Assembly: GCA_964035545.1 (NCBI GenBank) | Contig: OZ037766.1 | Location: 18,439,081-18,503,080 of the forward strand | Source of the DNA: Bugula neritina | Lineage: Eukaryota; Animalia; Bryozoa | Length of the DNA stretch: 64,000 bases | Direction of reading: 5' to 3' | Shown here: one piece after another, positions 6,001-28,929 of the stretch | How positions within the stretch are numbered: the first letter of the stretch is position 1 | Layout of the letters: each line of letters opens with the position of its first letter | Position numbers and translations under genes: made by a program | Notes under the pieces: model-generated | Told to the model about the DNA's origin: nothing | The model's database searches: none | The model's input: only the letters and a program-made list of their open reading frames with translations

Positions 6001-6289
6001 ATTTCAGTTTGTTACAGTAAATTTCAGTATGTTACAGTGCATTTGCAGATATTACACTATACTTCAGTGAGTTTTAGTGTCTTTCATTATGTTGCAGTAT
6101 ATTTCAGTATGTTGCAGTATTTTGCAATACATTTTATTATGTTACAGTGTATTTCAGTATGTTGCAGTATTTTGCAATATGTTTCAGTATGTTACAGTGT
6201 ATTTCAGTATGTTGCAGTATAATTCAGTATGTTACAATAAATTTCAGTATGTTACAGTACATTTTCGTAAATTACACTATACTTCAGGG

Positions 6290-9200
6290 AGTTGTAGTAT
6301 ATTTCAGTATCTTGCAGCATATCTCAGTATGTTACAGTGCATTTTCAGATTTTTCACTATACTTCAGTGAGTTTTAGTGTCTTTCAGTATGTTGCAGTAT
6401 TTTTCGGTATCTTGCAACTTATTTCAATGTGTTGCAATGTATTTCAATATGTTACAGTGTATTTCAGTATGTTGCAATATGTTGCAGTGTATTTCGGTAT
6501 GTTACAGTGTATTTCAGTAGTTTTCAGTATCTTGCAGTATATTTCAGTATGTTGCAGTATATTTCAGTGGGTTACAGTATATTCCAGTATCTTCCAGTAT
6601 GTTGCAGTATGTTGCAGTATGTTGCAGTGTATTTCTGTATGTTACAGTGTATTTCAGTATGTTGCAGTGTATTTCAGTATGTTACAGTGTATTTCAGTAT
6701 GTTGCAGTATTTTGCAATGCATTTCAGTATGTTACAGTGTATTTCAGTATGTTGCGGTATATTTCAGTATGTTACAATAAATTTCAGTATGTTACAGTAC
6801 ATTTCCATAAATTACACTATACTTCAGTAAGTTGTAGTATATTTCAGTATCTTGCATTATATCTCAGTATGTTCCAGTATATTTCAGTATGTTACAGTAT
6901 ATTTCAGTATGTCACAGTGCATTTCCAGATATTACACTATACTTCAGTGAGTTTTAGTGTCTTTCAGTATGTTGCAGTATGTTGCAGCGTATTTCAGTAT
7001 GTTACAGTGTATTTCAGTAGGTTTCAGTGTCTTGCAGTATATTTCAGCATGTTGCAGTATATTTCATTATGTTGCAGTATGTTGCAGTATGTTTCAGTAG
7101 TTTGCAACATATTTCAGTAGGTTAGTATATATTTCGGTATGTTGCAGCATATTTCAATGTGTTGCAGCGTATTTCAATATGTTACAGTGCATTTCAGTAT
7201 GTTGCAGTATGTTGCAGTATGCTGCAGTATGTTGCAGTGTATTTCTGTATGTTACAGTGTATTTCAGTATGTTGCAGTATATTTCAGTATGTTACAGTAT
7301 ATTTCAGTATGTTGCAGTATATTTCAGTGGGTTATAGTATATTTCAGTATGATACAGCGTCTTTCAGTATGTTACAGTGTATTTCAGTATGTTGCAGTAT
7401 TTTGCAATATGTTTCAGTATGTTACAGTGTATTTCAGTATGTTGCAGTATAATTCAGTATGTTACAATAAATTTCAGTATGTTACAGTACATTTTTGTAA
7501 ATTACACTATACTTCAGTGAGTTGTAGTATATTTCAGTATCTTGCAGTATATCTGAGTATGTTACAGTATATTTCAGTATGTTACAGTATATTCCACTGT
7601 GTTACAGTAAATTTCAATATGTTACAGTGCATTTGCAGATATTGCACTATACTTCAGTGAGTTTTAGTGCCTTTCAGTATGTTACAGTGTATTTCAGTAT
7701 GTTGCAGTATTTTGCAAAATATATCAGTATGTTACAGTGTATTTCAGTATGTTGCAGTATATTTCAGTATGTTACAATAAATTTCAGCATGTTACAGTAT
7801 ATTTCCGTGAATTACACTATACTTCAGTGAGCTGTAGTATATTTCAGTATCTTGCAGTATATCTCAGTATGTTACAGTATATTTCAGTATGTTACAGTAT
7901 ATTTCAGTTTGTTACAGTAAATTTCAGTATGTTACAGTGCATTTGCAGATATTACACTATACTTCAGTGAGTTTTAGTGTCTTTCAGTATGTTGCAGTAT
8001 ATTTCGGTATTTTGCAACATATTTCAATATGTTGCAATGTATTTCAATATGTTACAGTGTATTTCAGTATGTTGCAGTATATTTCAGGATGTTGCAGTAT
8101 ATTTCAGTATGTTACAGTGTTTTGCAGTATTTTGCAGTATATTTCAGTGTGTTACAGTATATTTCATTATGTTGCAGTATGTTGCAGTATATTTCAGTAG
8201 GTTACCATATATTTCGGTATGTTGCAGGATCTTTCAAGGTGTTGCAGTGTATTTCAATATGTTACAGTGTATTTCAGTATGTTGCAGTATGTTGCATTAT
8301 GCTGCAGTGTATTTCTGTATGTTACAGTGTATTTCAGTATGTTGCAGTACATTTCAGTATGTTACAGTATATTTCAGGATGTTGCAGTATATTTCAGTGG
8401 GTTATAGCATATTTCAGTATGATACAGCGTATTTCAGTATGTTACAGTGTACTTCAGTATGTTGTAGTATTTTGCAATATATTTCAGTATGTTACAGTGT
8501 ATTTCAGTATGTTGCAGTATATTTCAGTATGTTACATTAAATTTCAGTATGTTACAGTACATTTCCGTAAGTTACACTATACTTCAGGTAGTTGTAGCAT
8601 ATTTCAGTATCTTGCAGTATATCTCAGTATGTTACAGCATATTTCATTGTGTTGCAGTGTATTTCAATATGTTACAGTGTATTTCAGTATGTTGCAGTAT
8701 GTTGCAGTATGCTGCAGTATGTTGCAGTGTATTTCTGTATGTTACAGTGTATTTCAGTATGTTGCAGTATATTTCAGTATGTTACAGTATATTTCAGTAT
8801 GTTGCAGTATATTTCAGTGGGTTATAGTACATTTCCGTATGATACAGCGTCTTTCAGTATGTTACAGTGTATTTCAGTATGTTACAGTATTTTGCAATAT
8901 GTTTCAGTATGTTCCAGTGTATTTCAGTATGTTGCAGCATAATTCTGTATGTTACAATAAATTTCAGTATGTTACAGCACATTTTCGTAAATTACATTAT
9001 ACTTCAGTGAGTTGTAGTATATTTCAGTATCTTGCAGTATATCTCAGTATGTTACAGTATATTTCAGTATGTTACAGTATATTTCAGTGTGTAACAGTAA
9101 ATTTCAATATGTTACAGTGCTTTTGCAGATATTACACTATACTTCACTGAGTTTTAGTGCCTTTCAGTATGTTACAGTGTATTTCGGTATGTTGCAGTAT

Positions 9201-12200
9201 TTTGCAATATATATCAGTATGTTACAGTGTATTTCAGTATGTTGCAGTATATTTCAGTATGTTACATTAAATTTCAGTATGTTACAGTATATTTCCGTAA
9301 ATTACACTATACTTCAGTGAGTTGTAGTATATTTCAGTATCTTGCAGCATATCTCAGTATGTTACAGTGCATTTTCAGATTTTTCACTATACTTCAGTGA
9401 GTTTTAGTGTCTTTCAGTATGTTGCAGTATTTTTCGGTATCTTGCAACTTATTTCAATGTGTTGCAATGTATTTCAATATGTTACAGTGTATTTCAGTAT
9501 GTTGCAATATGTTGCAGTGTATTTCGGTATGTTACAGTGTATTTCAGTAGTTTTCAGTATCTTGCAGTATATTTCAGTATGTTGCAGTATATTTCAGTGG
9601 GTTACAGTATATTCCAGTATCTTCCAGTATGTTGCAGTATGTTGCAGTATGTTGCAGTGTATTTCTGTATGTTACAGTGTATTTCAGTATGTTGCAGTGT
9701 ATTTCAGTATGTTACAGTGTATTTCAGTATGTTGCAGTATTTTGCAATGCATTTCAGTATGTTACAGTGTATTTCAGTATGTTGCGGTATATTTCAGTAT
9801 GTTACAATAAATTTCAGTATGTTACAGTACATTTCCATAAATTACACTATACTTCAGTAAGTTGTAGTATATTTCAGTATCTTGCATTATATCTCAGTAT
9901 GTTCCAGTATATTTCAGTATGTTACAGTATATTTCAGTATGTCACAGTGCATTTCCAGATATTACACTATACTTCAGTGAGTTTTAGTGTCTTTCAGTAT
10001 GTTGCAGTATGTTGCAGCGTATTTCAGTATGTTACAGTGTATTTCAGTAGGTTTCAGTGTCTTGCAGTATATTTCAGCATGTTGCAGTATATTTCATTAT
10101 GTTGCAGTATGTTGCAGTATGTTTCAGTAGTTTGCAACATATTTCAGTAGGTTAGTATATATTTCGGTATGTTGCAGCATATTTCAATGTGTTGCAGCGT
10201 ATTTCAATATGTTACAGTGCATTTCAGTATGTTGCAGTATGTTGCAGTATGCTGCAGTATGTTGCAGTGTATTTCTGTATGTTACAGTGTATTTCAGTAT
10301 GTTGCAGTATATTTCAGTATGTTACAGTATATTTCAGTATGTTGCAGTATATTTCAGTGGGTTATAGTATATTTCAGTATGATACAGCGTCTTTCAGTAT
10401 GTTACAGTGTATTTCAGTATGTTGCAGTATTTTGCAATATGTTTCAGTATGTTACAGTGTATTTCAGTATGTTGCAGTATAATTCAGTATGTTACAATAA
10501 ATTTCAGTATGTTACAGTACATTTTTGTAAATTACACTATACTTCAGTGAGTTGTAGTATATTTCAGTATCTTGCAGTATATCTGAGTATGTTACAGTAT
10601 ATTTCAGTATGTTACAGTATATTCCACTGTGTTACAGTAAATTTCAATATGTTACAGTGCATTTGCAGATATTGCACTATACTTCAGTGAGTTTTAGTGC
10701 CTTTCAGTATGTTACAGTGTATTTCAGTATGTTGCAGTATTTTGCAAAATATATCAGTATGTTACAGTGTATTTCAGTATGTTGCAGTATATTTCAGTAT
10801 GTTACAATAAATTTCAGCATGTTACAGTATATTTCCGTGAATTACACTATACTTCAGTGAGCTGTAGTATATTTCAGTATCTTGCAGTATATCTCAGTAT
10901 GTTACAGTATATTTCAGTATGTTACAGTATATTTCAGTTTGTTACAGTAAATTTCAGTATGTTACAGTGCATTTGCAGATATTACACTATACTTCAGTGA
11001 GTTTTAGTGTCTTTCAGTATGTTGCAGTATATTTCGGTATTTTGCAACATATTTCAATATGTTGCAATGTATTTCAATATGTTACAGTGTATTTCAGTAT
11101 GTTGCAGTATATTTCAGGATGTTGCAGTATATTTCAGTATGTTACAGTGTTTTGCAGTATTTTGCAGTATATTTCAGTGTGTTACAGTATATTTCATTAT
11201 GTTGCAGTATGTTGCAGTATATTTCAGTAGGTTACCATATATTTCGGTATGTTGCAGGATCTTTCAAGGTGTTGCAGTGTATTTCAATATGTTACAGTGT
11301 ATTTCAGTATGTTGCAGTATGTTGCATTATGCTGCAGTGTATTTCTGTATGTTACAGTGTATTTCAGTATGTTGCAGTACATTTCAGTATGTTACAGTAT
11401 ATTTCAGGATGTTGCAGTATATTTCAGTGGGTTATAGCATATTTCAGTATGATACAGCGTATTTCAGTATGTTACAGTGTACTTCAGTATGTTGTAGTAT
11501 TTTGCAATATATTTCAGTATGTTACAGTGTATTTCAGTATGTTGCAGTATATTTCAGTATGTTACATTAAATTTCAGTATGTTACAGTACATTTCCGTAA
11601 GTTACACTATACTTCAGGTAGTTGTAGCATATTTCAGTATCTTGCAGTATATCTCAGTATGTTACAGCATATTTCATTGTGTTGCAGTGTATTTCAATAT
11701 GTTACAGTGTATTTCAGTATGTTGCAGTATGTTGCAGTATGCTGCAGTATGTTGCAGTGTATTTCTGTATGTTACAGTGTATTTCAGTATGTTGCAGTAT
11801 ATTTCAGTATGTTACAGTATATTTCAGTATGTTGCAGTATATTTCAGTGGGTTATAGTACATTTCCGTATGATACAGCGTCTTTCAGTATGTTACAGTGT
11901 ATTTCAGTATGTTACAGTATTTTGCAATATGTTTCAGTATGTTCCAGTGTATTTCAGTATGTTGCAGCATAATTCTGTATGTTACAATAAATTTCAGTAT
12001 GTTACAGCACATTTTCGTAAATTACATTATACTTCAGTGAGTTGTAGTATATTTCAGTATCTTGCAGTATATCTCAGTATGTTACAGTATATTTCAGTAT
12101 GTTACAGTATATTTCAGTGTGTAACAGTAAATTTCAATATGTTACAGTGCTTTTGCAGATATTACACTATACTTCACTGAGTTTTAGTGCCTTTCAGTAT

Positions 12201-12377
12201 GTTACAGTGTATTTCGGTATGTTGCAGTATTTTGCAATATATATCAGTATGTTACAGTGTATTTCAGTATGTTGCAGTATATTTCAGTATGTTACATTAA
12301 ATTTCAGTATGTTACAGTATATTTCCGTAAATTACACTATACTTCAGTGAGTTGTAGTATATTTCAGTATCTTGCAG
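6290..12377 (+). repeat. Tandem duplication, 2 x 3030 bp higher-order block
   Basis: Identical translated ORFs recur at +3030 (6337/9367, 6599/9629, 8029/11059, 9069/12099). Rare variants such as TTTGCAAAAT (7711/10741) and CTTTCAAGGT (8231/11261) recur at the same offset. Confidence 0.9.
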
Positions 12378-15300
12378 TATATCTCAGTATGTTACAGTAT
12401 ATTTCAGTATGTTACAGTATATTTCAGTTTGTTACAGTAAATTTCAGTATGTTACAGTGCATTTGCAGATATTACACTATACTTCAGTGAATTTTAGTGT
12501 CTTTCATTATGTTGCAGTATATTTCAGTATGTTGCAGTATTTTGCAATACATTTTATTATGTTACAGTGTATTTCAGTATGTTGCAGTATATTTCAGTTT
12601 GATACAATAAATTTCAGTATGTTACAGTACATTTCCGTAAATTACACTATACTTCAGTGAGTTGTAGTATATTTCAGTATCTTCAGTATATCTCAGTATG
12701 TTACAGTATATTTCAGCGTGTTTCAGTATATTTCAGTATGACACAGTGCATTTCCAGATATTACGCTATACTTCAGTGAGTTTTAGTGTCTTTCAGTATG
12801 TTGCAGTATATTTCGGTATTTTGCAACATATTTCAATATGTTGCAATGTATTTCAATATGTTACAGTGTATTTCAGTATCTTACAGTACATTTCCGTAAA
12901 TTACACTACACTTCAGTGAGTTGTAGTATATTTCAGTATCTTGCAGTATATCTCAGTATGTTACAGTATATTTCAGTATGTTACAGTATATTTCAGTGTG
13001 TTACAGTAAATTTCAGTATGTTACAGTGCATTTGCAGATATTACACTATACTTTAGTGAGTTTTAGTGTCTTTCAGTATCTTGCAGTATATTTCAGTATG
13101 TTGCAATATTTTGCAATATATTTTAGTATGTTACAGTGTATTTCAGTACCTTGCAGTATATTTCAGTATGATACAATAAATTTCAGTGTGTTACAGTACA
13201 TTTCTGCAAATTACACTATACTTCAGTGAGTTGTAGTATATTTCAGTATCTTGCAGTATATCTCAGTATGTTACAGTTGATTTCAGTATGTTCCAGTATA
13301 TTTCAGCGTGTTTCAGTATATTTCAGGATGCCACAGTGCATTTTCAGATTTTTCACTATACTTCAGTGAGTTTTAGTGTCTTTCAGTATGTTGCAGTATA
13401 TTTCGGTATCTTGCAACTTATTTCAATGTGTTGCAATGTAATTCAATATGTTACAGTGTATTTCAGTATGTTACAGTGCATTTCAGCATGTTGCAGTATA
13501 TTTCATTATGTTGCAGTATGTTGCAGTATGTTTCAGTAGTTTGCAACATATTTCAGTAGGTTAGTATATATTTCGGTATGTTGCAGCATATTTCAATGTG
13601 TTGCAGTGTATTTCAATATGTTACAGTGTATTTCAGTATGTTGCAGTATGTTGCAGTATGCTGCAGTATGTTGCAGTGTATTTCTGTATGTTACAGTGTA
13701 TTTCAGTATGTTGCAGTATATTTCAGTATGTTACAGTATATTTCAGTATGTTGCAGTATATTTCAGTGGGTTATAGTATATTTCAGTATGATACAGCGTC
13801 TTTCAGTATGTTACAGTGTATTTCAGTATGTTGCAGTATAATTCAGTATGTTACAATAAATTTCAGTATGTTACAGTGCATTTGCAGATATTACACTATA
13901 CTTCAGTGAGTTTTAGTGTCTTTCAGTATGTTGCAGTATATTTCGGTATTTTGCAACATATTTCAATATGTTGCAATGTATTTCAATATGTTACAGTGTA
14001 TTTCAGTATGTTGCAGTATGTTGCAATGTATTTCAGAATGTTACAGTGTATTTCAGTAGGTTTGAGTATCTTGCAGTATATTTCAGCATGTTGCAGTATA
14101 TTTCAGGATGTTGCAGTATATTTCAGTATGTTACGGTGTTTTGCAGTATTTTGCAGTATATTTCAGTGTGTTACAGTATATTTCATTATGTTGCAGTATG
14201 TTGCAGTATATTTCAGTATGTTACAGTATATTTCAGTTTGTTACAGTAAATTTCAGTATGTTACAGTGCATTTGCAGATATTACACTATACTTCAGTGAG
14301 TTTTAGTGTCTTTCATTATGTTGCAGTATATTTCAGTATGTTGCAGTATTTTGCAATGTATTTCAATATGTTACAGTGTATTTCAGTATGTTGCAGTATG
14401 TTGCAATGTATTTCAGTATGTTACAGTGTATTTCAGTATCTTACAGTACATTTCCGTAAATTACACTACACTTCAGTGAGTTGTAGTATATTTCAGTATC
14501 TTGCAGTATATCTCAGTATGTTACAGTATATTTCAGTATGTTACAGTGTATTTCAGTATGTTGCAGTATATTTCAGTATGTTACATTAAATTTCAGTATG
14601 TTACAGTATATTTCCGTAAATTACACTATACTTCAGTGAGTTGTAGTATATTTCAGTATCTTGCAGTATATCTCAGTATGTTACAGTATATTTCAGTATG
14701 TTACAGTATATTTCAGTTTGTTACAGTAAATTTCAGTATGTTACAGTGCATTTGCAGATATTACACTATACTTCAGTGAGTTTTAGTGTCTTTCATTATG
14801 TTGCAGTATATTTCAGTATGTTGCAGTAATTTGCAATACATTTTATTATGTTACAGTGTATTTCAGTATGTTGCAGTATATTTCAGTTTGATACAATAAA
14901 TTTCAGTATGTTACAGTACATTTCCGTAAATTACACTATACTTCAGTGAGTTGTGGTATATTTCAGTATCTTCAGTATATCTCAGTATGTTACAGTATAT
15001 TTCAGCGTGTTTCAGTATATTTCAGTATGACACAGTGCATTTCCAGATATTACGCTATACTTCAGTGAGTTTTAGTGTCTTTCAGTATGTTGCAGTATAT
15101 TTCGGTATTTTGCAACATATTTCAATATGTTGCAATGTATTTCAATATGTTACAGTGTATTTCAGTATCTTACAGTACATTTCCGTAAATTACACTACAC
15201 TTCAGTGAGTTGTAGTATATTTCAGTATCTTGCAGTATATCTCAGTATGTTACAGTATATTTCAGTATGTTACAGTATATTTCAGTGTGTTACAGTAAAT

Positions 15301-22100: not shown

Positions 22101-23547
22101 TTCAGTATGTTACAGTATATTTCAGTATGTTGCAGTATATTTCAGTGGGTTTTAGCATATTTCAGTATGATACAGCGTATTTCAGTATGTTACAGTGTAC
22201 TTCAGTATGTTGCAGTATTTTGCAATATATTTCAGTATGTTACAGTGTATTTCAGTATGTTGCAGTATATTTCAGTATGTTACATTAAATTTCAGTATGT
22301 TACAGTACATTTCCGTAAGTTACACTATACTTCAGGTAGTTGTAGCATATTTCAGTATCTTGCAGTATATCTCAGTATGTTACAGCATATTTCATTGTGT
22401 TGCAGTGTATTTCAATATGTTACAGTGTATTTCAGTATGTTGCAGTATGTTGCAGTATGCTGCAGTATGTTGCAGTGTATTTCTGTATGTTACAGTGTAT
22501 TTCAGTATGTTGCAGTATATTTCAGTATGTTACAGTATATTTCAGTATGTTGCAGTATATTTCAGTGGGTTATAGTACATTTCCGTATGATACAGCGTCT
22601 TTCAGTATGTTACAGTGTATTTCAGTATGTTGCAGTATTTTGCAATATGTTTCAGTATGTTCCAGTGTATTTCAGTATGTTGCAGTATAATTCTGTATGT
22701 TACAATAAATTTCAGTATGTTACAGCACATTTTCGTAAATTACATTATACTTCAGTGAGTTGTAGTATATTTCAGTATCTTGCAGTATATCTCAGTATGT
22801 TACAGTATATTTCAGTATGTTACAGTATATTTCAGTGTGTAACAGTAAATTTCAATATGTTACAGTGCTTTTGCAGATATTACACTATACTTCACTGAGT
22901 TTTAGTGCCTTTCAGTATGTTACAGTGTATTTCGGTATGTTGCAGTATTTTGCAATATATATCAGTATGTTACAGTGTATTTCAGTATGTTGCAGTATAT
23001 TTCAGTATGTTACATTAAATTTCAGTATGTTACAGTATATTTCCGTAAATTACACTATACTTCAGTGAGTTGTAGTATATTTCAATATCTTGCAGTATAT
23101 CTCAGTATGTTACAGTATATTTCAGTATGTTACAGTATATTTCAGTTTGTTACAGTAAATTTCAGTATGTTACAGTGCATTTGCAGATATTACACTATAC
23201 TTCAGTGAGTTTTAGTGTCTTTCATTATGTTGCAGTATATTTCAGTATGTTGCAGTATTTTGCAATACATTTTATTATGTTACAGTGTATTTCAGTATGT
23301 TGCAGTATATTTCAGTTTGATACAATAAATTTCAGTATGTTACAGTACATTTCCGTAAATTACACTATACTTCAGTGAGTTGTAGTCTATTTCAGTATCT
23401 TCAGTATATCTCAGTATGTTACAGTATATTTCAGCGTGTTTCAGTATATTTCAGTATGACACAGTGCATTTCCAGATATTACGCTCTACTTCAGTGAGTT
23501 TTAGTGTCTTTCAGTATGTTGCAGTATATTTCGGTATTTTCAACATA

Positions 23548-23579
23548 TGTGATGGCTGCTGTCATTTTTGGTCTCTTGG
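23548..23579 (+). repeat. Left terminal inverted repeat TGTGATGGCTGCTGTCATTTTTGGTCTCTTGG
   Basis: Matches the reverse complement of 24455-24486 (TGTGATGGCTCCCGTCAGTTTTGGTCTCTTGG) except at TIR positions 11, 13 and 18. Confidence 0.93.
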
Positions 23580-24144
23580 GGGTCTGCTAACATTTTTACT
23601 TTTTAATGTGGATGAGTAGAGTAGGACTTTGTGATCACATTGCAATTTAAATTTTTAAAATCAGTCAAATAGAACCATAGATATGCCCGGTTATACACAC
23701 AGCGGTCCTCAACAAACGACTTCTATTATTGCGAGTAATTAACAGTCAAAGTTCGGCGACTTAGAATTATACTAAATTTGTTGATTATCTACCTAGCAAC
23801 AGTGTCTTCAATTAGCTCCATCAGCCCAACAGTTAGTTACCAGGGGCGGTTTTTTACGCTGATCATGAAAATATTAATTTAAAATTCATATCTGCAATAT
23901 CTTAATCAATATTTCAGAGTTGAGTTCAGTATAATGAGAACATTTTGATGATTATCCCAAGAGATTAATACTATAATGCCACGTGGTTTCATAATAAAAT
24001 CTAACTCTTTTGGATCACTGTTGCCACTAAGTTCATCATTACTATTATGACCACTACTCTTCAGTCCTTGTTCTTAATTTTCAATGTAGAAACATTCTTT
24101 TAAATTGGTAATATCTGTTATCTATTAACTTGCAGCGCGATCTA

Positions 24145-24346
24145 GTCGCCATGTTTATTATTAGTAACAATTCTCAGTCAAATTATACTTAACTACGTTA
24201 CGCTCTACGCTACGCCGCTATTTGAACTATTGTTAAAGGTCGCGCTATTATGCTCTAATCACGTGACCAGCTTGCCAACCATGGAATGGCTCATTAAAAC
24301 ACCAATCATTCATAAACCATAGCAAATATCACAAAACTGATTGGAC
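24145..24346 (-). promoter_or_regulatory. Putative TATA-less Pol II promoter remnant inside the transposon (two CCAAT boxes, USF-type E-box, YY1/Kozak-like ATG)
   Basis: CTGATTGG at 24337-24344, ACCAATCA at 24301-24308, TCACGTGACC at 24259-24268, a CpG-rich patch at about 24135-24245, and minus-strand AAACATGGCG with ATG at 24152-24150. Motif evidence only. Confidence 0.45.
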
Positions 24347-24454
24347 AGCTAGAAAGAGCACATGTTAATTGCCTATTATACACTAAAAGCTGAAATTGAC
24401 CTATTTATGACAACTATAGATAAAACCCCTTATAACTAACAATAGCGAATAATG

Positions 24455-24486
24455 CCAAGAGACCAAAACTGACGGGAGCCATCACA
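24455..24486 (-). repeat. Right terminal inverted repeat CCAAGAGACCAAAACTGACGGGAGCCATCACA
   Basis: Reverse complement of the left TIR at 29/32 identity; followed directly by the duplicated TA at 24487-24488. Confidence 0.93.
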
Positions 24487-26259
24487 TATTTCAATATGTT
24501 GCAATGTATTTCAATATGTTACAGTGTATTTCAGTATCTTACAGTACATTTCCGTAAATTACACTACACTTCAGTGAGTTGTAGTATATTTCAGTATCTT
24601 GCAGTATATCTCAGTATGTTACAGTATATTTCAGTATGTTACAGTATATTTCAGTGTGTTACAGTAAATTTCAGTATGTTACAGTGCATTTGCAGATATT
24701 ACACTATACTTTAGTGAGTTTTAGTGTCTTTCAGTATCTTGCAGTATATTTCAGTATGTTGCAATATTTTGCAATATATTTTAGTATGTTACAGTGTATT
24801 TCAGTACCTTGCAGTATATTTCAGTATGATACAATAAATTTCAGTGTGTTGCAGTATATTTCAGTGGGTTATAGCATATTTCAGTATGATACAGCGTATT
24901 TCAGTATGTTACAGTGTACTTCAGTATGTTGCAGTATTTTGCAATATATTTCAGTATGTTACAGTGTATTTCAGTATGTTGCAGTATATTTCAGTATGTT
25001 ACATTAAATTTCAGTATGTTACAGTACATTTCCGTAAGTTACACTATACTTCAGGTAGTTGTAGCATATTTCAGTATCTTGCAGTATATCTCAGTATGTT
25101 ACAGCATATTTCATTGTGTTGCAGTGTATTTCAATATGTTACAGTGTATTTCAGTATGTTGCAGTATGTTGCAGTATGCTGCAGTACGTTGCAGTGTATT
25201 TCTGTATGTTACAGTGTATTTCAGTATGTTGCAGTATATTTCAGTATGTTACAGTATATTTCAGTATGTTGCAGTATATTTCAGTGGGTTATAGTACATT
25301 TCCGTATGATACAGCGTCTTTCAGTATGTTACAGTGTATTTCAGTATGTTGCAGTATTTTGCAATATGTTTCAGTATGTTCCAGTGTATTTCAGTATGTT
25401 GCAGTATAATTCTGTATGTTACAATAAATTTCAGTATGTTACAGCACATTTTCGTAAATTACATTATACTTCAGTGAGTTGTAGTATATTTCAGTATCTT
25501 GCAGTATATCTCAGTATGTTACAGTATATTTCAGTATGTTACAGTATATTTCAGTGTGTAACAGTAAATTTCAATATGTTACAGTGCTTTTGCAGATATT
25601 ACACTATACTTCACTGAGTTTTAGTGCCTTTCAGTATGTTACAGTGTATTTCGGTATGTTGCAGTATTTTGCAATATATATCAGTATGTTACAGTGTATT
25701 TCAGTATGTTGCAGTATATTTCAGTATGTTACATTAAATTTCAGTATGTTACAGTATATTTCCGTAAATTACACTATACTTCAGTGAGTTGTAGTATATT
25801 TCAATATCTTGCAGTATATCTCAGTATGTTACAGTATATTTCAGTATGTTACAGTATATTTCAGTTTGTTACAGTAAATTTCAGTATGTTACAGTGCATT
25901 TGCAGATATTACACTATACTTCAGTGAGTTTTAGTGTCTTTCATTATGTTGCAGTATATTTCAGTATGTTGCAGTATTTTGCAATACATTTTATTATGTT
26001 ACAGTGTATTTCAGTATGTTGCAGTATATTTCAGTTTGATACAATAAATTTCAGTATGTTACAGTACATTTCCGTAAATTACACTATACTTCAGTGAGTT
26101 GTAGTATATTTCAGTATCTTCAGTATATCTCAGTATGTTACAGTATATTTCAGCGTGTTTCAGTATATTTCAGTATGACACAGTGCATTTCCAGATATTA
26201 CGCTATACTTCAGTGAGTTTTAGTGTGTTTCAGTATGTTGCAGTATATTTCGGTATTTT

Positions 26260-26272
26260 CAACATAATATTT
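26260..26272. other. Probable transposon excision footprint (CAACA-TA-A-TA-TTT, +3 bp versus the empty site)
   Basis: Lies at the position homologous to the insertion (offset 2719) in the neighbouring duplicate. It shares the private G deletion CGGTATTTT^CAAC with the occupied site and retains a duplicated TA separated by one A. Confidence 0.8.
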
Positions 26273-28929
26273 AAATATGTTGCAATGTATTTCAATATGT
26301 TACAGTGTATTTCAGTATCTTACAGTACATTTCCGTAAATTACACTACACTTCAGTGAGTTGTAGTATATTTCAGTATCTTGCAGTATATCTCAGTATGT
26401 TACAGTATATTTCAGTATGTTACAGTATATTTCAGTGTGTTACAGTAAATTTCAGTATGTTACAGTGCATTTGCAGATATTACACTATACTTTAGTGAGT
26501 TTTAGTGTCTTTCAGTATCTTGCAGTATATTTCAGTATGTTGCAATATTTTGCAATATATTTTAGTATCTTACAGTGTATTTCAGTACCTTGCAGTATAT
26601 TTCAGTATGATACAATAAATTTCAGTGTGTTACAGTACATTTCTGCAAATTACACTATACTTCAGTGAGTTGTAGTATATTTCAGTATCTTGCAGTATAT
26701 CTCAGTATGTTACAGTTGATTTCAGTATGTTCCAGTATATTTCAGCGTGTTTCAGTATATTTCAGGATGCCACAGTGCATTTTCAGATTTTTCACCATAC
26801 TTCAGTGAGTTTTAGTGTCTTTCAGTATGTTGCAGTATATTTCGGTATCTTGCAACTTATTTCAATGTGTTGCAATGTAATTCAATATGTTACAGTGTAT
26901 TTCAGTATGTTACAGTGTATTTCAGCATGTTGCAGTATATTTCATTATGTTGCAGTATGCTGCAGTATGTTTCAGTAGTTTGCAACATATTTCAGTAGGT
27001 TAGTATATATTTCGGTATGTTGCAGCATATTTCAATGTGTTGCAGTGTATTTCAATATGTTACAGTGTATTTCAGTATGTTGCAGTATGTTGCAGTATGC
27101 TGCAGTATGTTGCAGTGTATTTCTGTATGTTACAGTGTATTTCAGTATGTTGCAGTATATTTCAGTATGTTACAGTATATTTCAGTATGTTGCAGTATAT
27201 TTCAGTGGGTTATAGTCTATTTCAGTATGATACAGCGTCTTTCAGTATGTTACAGTGTATTTCAGTATGTTGCAGTATTTTGCAATATGTTTCAGTATGT
27301 TACAGTGTATTTCAGTATGTTCCAGTATAATTCAGTATGTTACAATAAATTTCAGTATGTTACAGTACATTTTCGTAAATTACACTATACTTCAGTGAGT
27401 TGTAGTATATTTCAGTATCTTGCAGTATATCTCAGTATGTTACAGTATATTTCAGTATGTTACAGTATATTTCACTGTGTTACAGTAAATTTCAATATGT
27501 TACAGTGCATTTGCAGATATTACACTATACTTCAGTGAGTTTTAGTGCCTTTCAGTATGTTACAGTGTATTTCAGTATGTTGCAGTATTTTGCAATATAT
27601 ATCAGTATGTTACAGTGTATTTCAGTATGTTGCAGTATATTTCAGTATGTTACAATAAATTTCAGTATGTTACAGCATATTTCCATGAATTACACTATAC
27701 TTCAGTGAGTTGTAGTATATTTCAGTATCTTGCAGTATATCTCAGTATGTTACAGTATATTTCAGTTTGTTACAGTAAATTTCAGTATGTCACAGTGCAT
27801 TTGCAGATATTACACTATACTTCAGTGAGTTTTAGTGTCTTTCTGTATGTTGCAGTATATTTCGGTATTTTGCAACATATTTCAATATGTTGCAATGTAT
27901 TTCAATATGTTACAGTGTATTTCAGTATGTTGCAGTATGTTGCAATGTATTTCAGAATGTTACAGTGTATTTCAGTAGGTTTCAGTATCTTGCAGTATAT
28001 TTCAGCATGTTGCAGTATATTTCGGGATGTTGCAGTATATTTCAGTATGTTACGGTGTTTTGCAGTATTTTGCAGTATATTTCAGTGTGTTACAGTATAT
28101 TTCATTATGTTGCAGTATGTTGCAGTATATTTCAGTATGTTACAGTATATTTCAGTTTGTTACAGTAAATTTCAGTATGTTACAGTGCATTTGCAGATAT
28201 TACACTATACTTCAGTGAGTTTTAGTGTCTTTCATTATGTTGCAGTATATTTCAGTATGTTGCAGTATTTTGCAATGTATTTCAATATGTTACAGTGTAT
28301 TTCAGTATGTTGCAGTATGTTGCAATGTATTTCAGTATGTTACAGTGTATTTCAGTATCTTACAGTACATTTCCGTAAATTACACTACACTTCAGTGAGT
28401 TGTAGTATATTTCAGTATGTTGCAGTATATCTCAGTATGTTACAGTATATTTCAGTATGTTACAGTATATTTCAGTGTGTTACAGTAAATTTCAGTATGT
28501 TACAGTGCATTTGCAGATATTACACTATACTTCAGTGAGTTTTAGTGTCTTTCAGTATCTTGCAGTATATTTCAGTATGTTGCAATATTTTGCAATATAT
28601 TTTAGTATGTTATAGTGTATTTCAGTACGTTGCAGTATATTTCAGTATGATACAATAAATTTCAGTGTGTTACAGTACATTTCTGCAAATTACACTATAC
28701 TTCAGTGAGTTGTAGTATATTTCAGTATCTTGTAGTATATCTCAGTATGTTACAGTATATTTCAGTATGTTGCAGTATATTTCAGCGTGTTTGAGTATAT
28801 TTCAGTATGACACAGTGCATTTCCAGATATTACGCTATACTTCCGTGAGTTTTAGTGTCTTTCAGTATGTTGCAGTATATTTCGGTGTTTTGCAACATAT
28901 TTCAATATGTTGCAATGTATTTCAATATG

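Follow-up and report, generated by a model that had tools for sequence, protein, structure and literature searches.

The 64-kb window of the Bugula neritina genome described here (the window being the whole stretch of DNA analysed) is a single satellite with a 20-bp monomer and an irregular higher-order structure, and one site in it occurs in three states: empty, occupied by a 939-bp transposable element with terminal inverted repeats (TIRs), and without the element but longer by 3 bp (+ATA). The satellite array around the locus is more than 500 kb long, and the strict-consensus monomer was counted more than 28,000 times (about 28,060) genome-wide. The element, at 23548-24486, is the only non-satellite DNA at the three-state locus. 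It lies in satellite block A, which is followed directly by block B, where the +3-bp form is found; copy C, 99.3% identical to B, shows the empty-site form CAACATATTTCAAT. The extra 3 bp of B are located inside 26265-26269, and a C-to-A change private to B lies 4 bp to the right, at 26273. All sequence states were read from one 216-Mb assembly, in which the string of the putative scar in B has a single occurrence (coordinates are collected in Table 1). The original prediction, made from the letters of the window, had named the empty, occupied and +3-bp strings, and all of them were found in their places. The three-state site is real and neatly preserved.

We compared A and B by global alignment (22128-24846 against 24847-26627), which returned 7 substitutions and one 938-bp indel placed exactly at the insertion site. 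Outside the insertion the two blocks are about 99.6% identical (7 differences over about 1,778 aligned positions, a divergence of 0.39%), and the tandem period is 2719 bp; the view that they are adjacent tandem copies with few substitutions was thus confirmed. The left flank of copy C (from 11348) matches on into the sequence before A, and its right flank (to 13839) matches on into the sequence after B. Since the C locus has one unit and the A/B locus has two, A and B together represent a tandem duplication, and at its junction (24846/24847) only TGTT is common to both parental contexts. These data show that A and B are sister blocks which arose by tandem duplication. Two variants common to them had been put forward as marks of a shared lineage, namely a deletion of one G, which genome-wide is restricted to A and B and lies 5 bp from the insertion site, and the variant TTCAATATCT, which occurs in the window only at 23081 (A) and 25800 (B). 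Both are private to the pair, the former in the genome and the latter in the window, and they support the sister relationship, although they do not in themselves show that the insertion preceded the duplication. A pristine empty site with the G deletion was found nowhere in the assembly.

The differences between A and B were polarised using copy C and three more distant copies as outgroups. The +ATA and the neighbouring C-to-A are both derived and private to B, and A retains the ancestral flank; the reverse polarity, in which the state of B is ancestral and that of A derived, was rejected, as it would require two exact reversions in A. Because copy C is empty, the insertion is younger than the split between the AB lineage and C. 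It post-dates a split of about 0.7%, so a transposase able to move the element was present at about that time.

Folded as DNA, the empty site, which forms an 11-bp perfect hairpin palindrome (TTGCAACATAT / ATATGTTGCAA), gives -9.5 kcal/mol (z -6.2). The element is inserted in the left arm of this palindrome, and the corresponding hairpin in B is weaker (-4.0 kcal/mol).

The three states are probably best read, as far as sequence comparison goes, as an insertion, followed by the duplication, followed by excision from B. A 939-bp non-autonomous element, moved in trans by a DDE/D transposase of the type that bears the Pfam domain DUF7869 (see below), would have entered a palindromic monomer at its ATAT, in the ancestor that A and B share and after the split from copy C. 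A tandem duplication at short homology would then have copied the block of about 2.7 kb with the element in it, and the element would later have been excised from B and the break rejoined without a template. The rejoining would have kept both target copies with a net gain of 3 bp (TA-A-TA, or equally ATA-ATA), and the C-to-A 4 bp to the right is probably associated with the repair. We favour excision because the only indel between A and B sits exactly at the insertion site and the satellite otherwise hardly gains indels. The two changes private to B lie within 7 bp of each other and fit a single complex repair event, and the G deletion beside the site is confined genome-wide to the two copies that the element affected. 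A more far-reaching version, to which we give little credence, would make the locus a natural excision record of a DUF7869 transposon that was cut out cleanly and left its duplicated A|WW|T target intact, with the G deletion, the scar and the palindrome-completing C-to-A all as repair traces of an element in a hairpin-forming monomer.

Table 1. Sequence features of the three-state site, of the element family and of related loci (positions without a contig prefix refer to the window)
Feature	Position	Strand	Description
Window	C2:18439081-18503080		64 kb of the assembly
Satellite block A	22128..24846	+	2719 bp, carries the element
Satellite block B	24847..26627	+	1781 bp, tandem sister of A, without the element
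Copy C	11410..13188	+	single-unit paralogue, empty
First empty site, pre-insertion, in copy C	12819..12837		TTTTG-CAACA-TA-TTTCAAT, TTTTGCAACATATTTCAAT
Second empty site	15108..15126		TTTTG-CAACA-TA-TTTCAAT, in a more distant paralogue
Occupied site in A	23537-24495		TTTT-CAACA-TA at 23537-23547, element, TA-TTTCAAT at 24487-24495
Left copy of the duplicated TA	23546..23547		with the preceding invariant A and the first T of the element also ATA or ATAT
Right copy of the duplicated TA	24487..24488		
Non-autonomous TIR element	23548..24486	.	939 bp
Left TIR	23548..23579	+	32 bp
Right TIR	24455..24486	-	32 bp, 29/32 complementary to the left TIR
Putative excision scar in B	26260..26276		CAACA-TA-A-TA-TTTAAAT
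B site including the T run	26256-26276		TTTT-CAACA-TA-A-TA-TTTAAAT; scarred string CAACATAATATTTAAAT
Tandem-duplication junction	24843..24850		right-end match of C joined to left-end match of C via TGTT microhomology
Derived changes, A lineage			3 substitutions and the element
Derived changes, B lineage			4 substitutions and +ATA; the C-to-A at 26273 is one of the four
Derived changes, AB stem			G deletion and 1-4 substitutions
Target duplication read as 2 bp (TA)			ends TG...CA; scar in B TA-A-TA
Target duplication read as 3 bp (ATA)			ends TGTG...CAC; scar in B keeps both target copies exactly
Target duplication read as 4 bp (AWWT)			ends G...C; scar in B keeps both copies minus one base
Other +ATA monomers	C2:18745904-18886011; C4:15417830-15436171; C6:7327000-7336500 (L044)		CAG[T/C]ATAATATTTCA
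Interrupted copies of the 939-bp family	C2:10085235-10090961 (L031); C3:15365120-15378994 (L028, L029, L032)		
Young 3.0-kb DUF7869 copies	C8:9471238-9474244 (L052); C1 (L053); C6 (L054)		

Several observations weigh against this history. The additional 3 bp are a perfect tandem duplication of ATA with nothing specific to the element in the scar, and replication slippage also makes tandem duplications of this type; the proposed sequence of events stands as the best explanation of the only A/B indel, but the scar by itself is identical to a simple ATA duplication. Unrelated copies on C2, C4 and C6 have gained +ATA independently, at the identical position of the monomer. The C-to-A turns a quasi-palindrome into the perfect palindrome ATATTTAAATAT, and quasi-palindrome correction is a known type of spontaneous templated mutation that needs no break, so that this change in B could come from break repair or from such a correction. 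The target site duplication (TSD) is ambiguous in length (2-4 bp), and no intact transposase source with matching TIRs is present in the assembly. No doubly occupied allele or paralogue is known from the one assembly covered, in which the element at the locus and the B string have one occurrence each.

The alternative that survives best, although we regard it as improbable, is a coincidence in which an empty block was duplicated, the element entered A only, and B independently gained +ATA by slippage together with a quasi-palindrome-correcting C-to-A. The perfect tandem nature of +ATA and its recurrence at the same monomer position in unrelated arrays speak for it, as do the 11-bp hairpin palindrome, a structure favouring templated mutation, the C-to-A that renders the centre perfectly palindromic, and the G deletion, a change of the AB stem 5 bp from the site that may mark a local hot spot. 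However, the background rates lean toward excision. Of about 28,060 strict-consensus monomers in the genome, 21 have +ATA (about 0.075%), accumulated over the whole lifetime of the satellite, and these 21 are clustered as higher-order-repeat copies at C2:18.75-18.89 Mb and C4:15.42 Mb; the array on C6 holds +ATA as a fixed variant. Such monomers could be old slippage events or old scars of ATAT-targeting elements. By its own terms the original prediction was to be refuted by the same ATA insertion in unrelated copies without the G deletion; such copies do exist on C2, C4 and C6, but at the low frequency just given. An event with a frequency of 0.1% or less over the whole age of the satellite would be needed on a branch of 4 substitutions.

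Within the window, B is the only one of 1070 ATATTT sites at which +ATA is seen. When sites were anchored by the right palindrome arm (n = 125), only A and B were out of register, and the indel is absent both from the 123 other exact copies of the palindromic empty site in the genome, all of which are intact, and from about 120 related sites in the window. A general tendency of the palindrome to acquire indels is not supported, no other paralogous site being out of register; the only neighbouring variants found were two T-run deletions (C2:18407778 and C2:18412706). Window paralogues at least 97% identical, from which the indel/substitution ratio was taken, show about 0.05 indels per substitution, which for the 4 substitutions of the B branch predicts about 0.2 indels per 1781 bp and about 6e-4 for a 5-bp spot. 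The chance of the coincidence is thus about 6e-4 or lower, and that of +ATA at the B site is estimated at roughly 1e-3 or less.

An assembly artefact appears less probable still; here errors of consensus or polishing would have produced +ATA and C-to-A, or two alleles would have been mislaid in tandem as A and B. Assemblies are fragile in a satellite array of more than 500 kb, and the 0.39% divergence between A and B is within the range of allelic heterozygosity. On the other hand, the region has no Ns or gaps and its consensus looks clean; a random 3-bp assembly error is unlikely, since near-identical window paralogues hardly ever differ by an indel. No other place in the genome has the B string, which was therefore not imported from mis-mapped reads of another monomer, and a 3-bp insertion plus a transversion is atypical of long-read error. 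Should A and B be alleles after all, excision would still be indicated by an occupied site opposite a scarred one.

We consider it very unlikely that the duplication came first and that the element entered B, was excised with a scar, and then reached the homologous TA of A by a local hop or an independent insertion. The strict A|WW|T target of the family and the tendency of cut-and-paste elements toward nearby reinsertion are in its favour, but a single site must then be hit twice where the window offers more than 1000 ATATTT sites, and only 1 of the 123 identical palindromic sites is occupied. Three further candidates were rejected. Had the element been lost by slippage between the direct repeats at its ends (ACATAT, 6 bp), the exact empty site would have been restored and not the +3-bp form; gene conversion from a +ATA monomer elsewhere does not fit, as those monomers read CAG[T/C]ATAATATTTCAG and lack the CAACA context and TTTAAAT; and a templated insertion from nearby sequence or from the element is not supported, since no 9-mer or 10-mer spanning the inserted ATA (CATAATATT through AATATTTAA) occurs elsewhere in the window on either strand. 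The other recurring junction words come either from the satellite monomer or from the palindrome matching itself.

Insertion followed by duplication and excision requires an element that can be moved. No open reading frame (ORF) of at least 40 aa was found within the 939-bp element, and its movement needs a trans-acting enzyme. The genome holds about 24 full-length copies of the family (937-951 bp), plus fragments, and the other copies are 91-98% identical to the copy in A, which has 36 differences from the family consensus, 13 of them private. An autonomous element with the same TIRs did not emerge from a genome-wide search: all 58 TIR matches come from the 939-bp family or its decayed relatives, and none is an intact autonomous element. 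Positions 1-60, 288-395 and 413-842 of the element match a longer decayed element (L033), and the 939-bp element keeps a remnant of the 5' end of the transposase gene. It has no coding capacity, has both ends in common with a longer coding element, and is present in multiple uniform copies. To judge from these matches, it is an internal-deletion derivative of an element with a DUF7869 transposase. Near position 575-580, two copies of the family are interrupted, one by about 4.8 kb and the other by about 12.9 kb of inserted DNA; the 4.8-kb insert, in L031, is AT-rich and has no ORF of at least 100 aa.

The dinucleotide flanking the element is identical on both sides in 24 of 24 copies (TA in 18, TT in 5 and AA in 1), and the A at -1 and the T at +2 are likewise invariant in all 24, giving a strict family target pattern of A|WW|T. 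Because of these invariant bases, and because the first base of the element is T and its last is A, 2, 3 and 4 bp are equally valid lengths for the TSD. Each reading describes the scar in B differently (Table 1), and TA-A-TA, exact ATA-ATA, and AWWT minus one base are all plausible footprints. The extra A of the scar could be a palindromic nucleotide from an opened flank hairpin. As to the claim that the family has been active recently, the insertion does post-date a split of about 0.7%, but the identity among copies is only 91-98%, the copy in A has accumulated its 13 private changes, and an intact autonomous partner is lacking; recent activity is weakly supported, and in a limited sense only.

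The source of the transposase was sought in longer relatives with the same ends, L033 (C1:12519255 onward) and L037. Their additional sequence, about 2.7 kb, contains a transposase gene that is broken into fragments and lies on the opposite strand; these line up along uncharacterised, DUF7869-bearing animal proteins about 620 aa in length. No DDE_1, DDE_3 or Transposase_1 match, that is, no Tc1/mariner or pogo domain, was obtained in the decayed relatives, and the 939-bp family is not a demonstrated member of Tc1/mariner. The DUF7869 protein family comprises 7128 clusters at E <=0.001. An alignment of 28 DUF7869 proteins has the invariant residues D348, D427 and D469; with an AlphaFold model (mean pLDDT 82.7), Foldseek returned generic RNase-H-fold cores only (TnsB, retroviral integrases and IstA). 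Pfam profiles return DUF7869 alone and no superfamily name, a PDB sequence search with the transposase gave no match, and a literature search gave no paper naming DUF7869. With more than 7000 protein clusters the lineage is very widespread; the libraries and literature searched give it no named superfamily.

Bao, Jurka and Kapitonov reportedly described in 2009 both Sola, with a DDD transposase and a 4-bp TSD, and Zator, with a TP36/PF07592-related transposase and a 3-bp TSD. Set beside the DUF7869 lineage by these descriptions, Sola and Zator are the nearest named candidates. PF07592 (the TP36/ISAzo13 family) matched one of three homologues, at E 0.002 and 17.5 bits against a curated cut-off of 26.9 bits. 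Zator has been linked to TP36 and is said to derive from the PF07592/TP36 family (PMC7386202).

Two other groups of DUF7869 sequences were found. A separate young 3.0-kb family has three copies of 99.1-99.5% identity, in each of which a 448-aa open frame covers the catalytic domain, and this family may be currently mobile. Its TIRs begin TGAAGACCTC and are unrelated to those of the 939-bp family, which makes cross-mobilisation unlikely; its flanking duplications are CA or TA, with an invariant A before and T after (A|NN|T). A more distant DUF7869 gene copy (L040, C3:22749144-22752350) has an intact 367-aa N-terminal ORF followed by pieces of the catalytic domain in other frames, and the frame breaks reflect either introns or decay. 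It has a counterpart in a 97%-identical protein in a JGI data set (P0001).

Two features of the satellite itself were also recorded. The palindromic monomer variant TTGCAACATATTTCAATATGTTGC has 123 occurrences, all on the forward strand, and the 100 listed places are all in one C2 array, from C2:18369099 to about 18.66 Mb and further; the variant may serve as a local marker of the higher-order repeat. Stretches of 2-3 kb recur in the window (6289-9347 against 9319-12377, and 1-2034 against 6431-8464 and 9461-11494), offset by 3030, 6430 and 9460 bp and with 0-2 differences between copies. They reflect either very recent duplications of higher-order repeats or a collapse or expansion of the assembly.

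If the scar is genuine, one 15-kb stretch preserves the states before, during and after a single insertion, dated against a tandem duplication. It would then show directly that satellite arrays lose insertions via transposase-mediated excision as well as by recombination, and it would be the first natural footprint for a poorly described transposase lineage. No principle is changed, since footprints and transposons carried in repeat duplications are already textbook matter; the event is of an ordinary, well-known kind, nicely preserved, and it is of use as a clean worked example and, in population surveys, as a marker of the array.

The site resembles the excision footprints of DDE elements (Tc1/Tc3, mariner/Mos1, Sleeping Beauty and Ac/Ds), in which both sides retain the target duplication, a few bases at most being extra or missing, with a net gain of a few bp, while a close homologous site still holds the TIR element. 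Here too there is an occupied homologous site with TIRs and a TSD, a known empty state, and a scar exactly at the insertion point. The scar in B, however, comes from a comparison of paralogues and not from an experiment or from alleles, and its prior occupancy is inferred. Between the TAs, a canonical Tc1/mariner scar retains 2-3 bases of the element; B keeps at most one (TA-A-TA), and none if the TSD is ATA. The family is like the miniature transposable elements with inverted repeats (MITEs) of Tc1/mariner type in its TIRs, TG...CA termini, lack of an ORF, uniform size, mostly TA flanks and AT-rich palindromic target. It differs from Tc1/mariner, with its strict TA TSD, in having TT or AA in 6 of 24 copies, and from Tc1/mariner and pogo in that its autonomous remnants carry DUF7869 in place of their transposase domains; it also differs from a classic MITE in being a 939-bp deletion derivative with a remnant of the 5' end of a transposase gene. 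Compared by description only, the three invariant aspartates and the possible AWWT reading recall the DDD transposase and 4-bp TSD attributed to Sola, and the 3-bp TSD attributed to Zator would agree with ATA, one of three equally valid TSD readings, although the PF07592 match that would tie the DUF7869 lineage to the TP36 transposase of Zator lies below the cut-off. As in other insertions carried along in higher-order-repeat duplications of satellites, the element is embedded in a tandemly duplicated block; in this case only one of the two copies retains it, so that its co-duplication is inferred.

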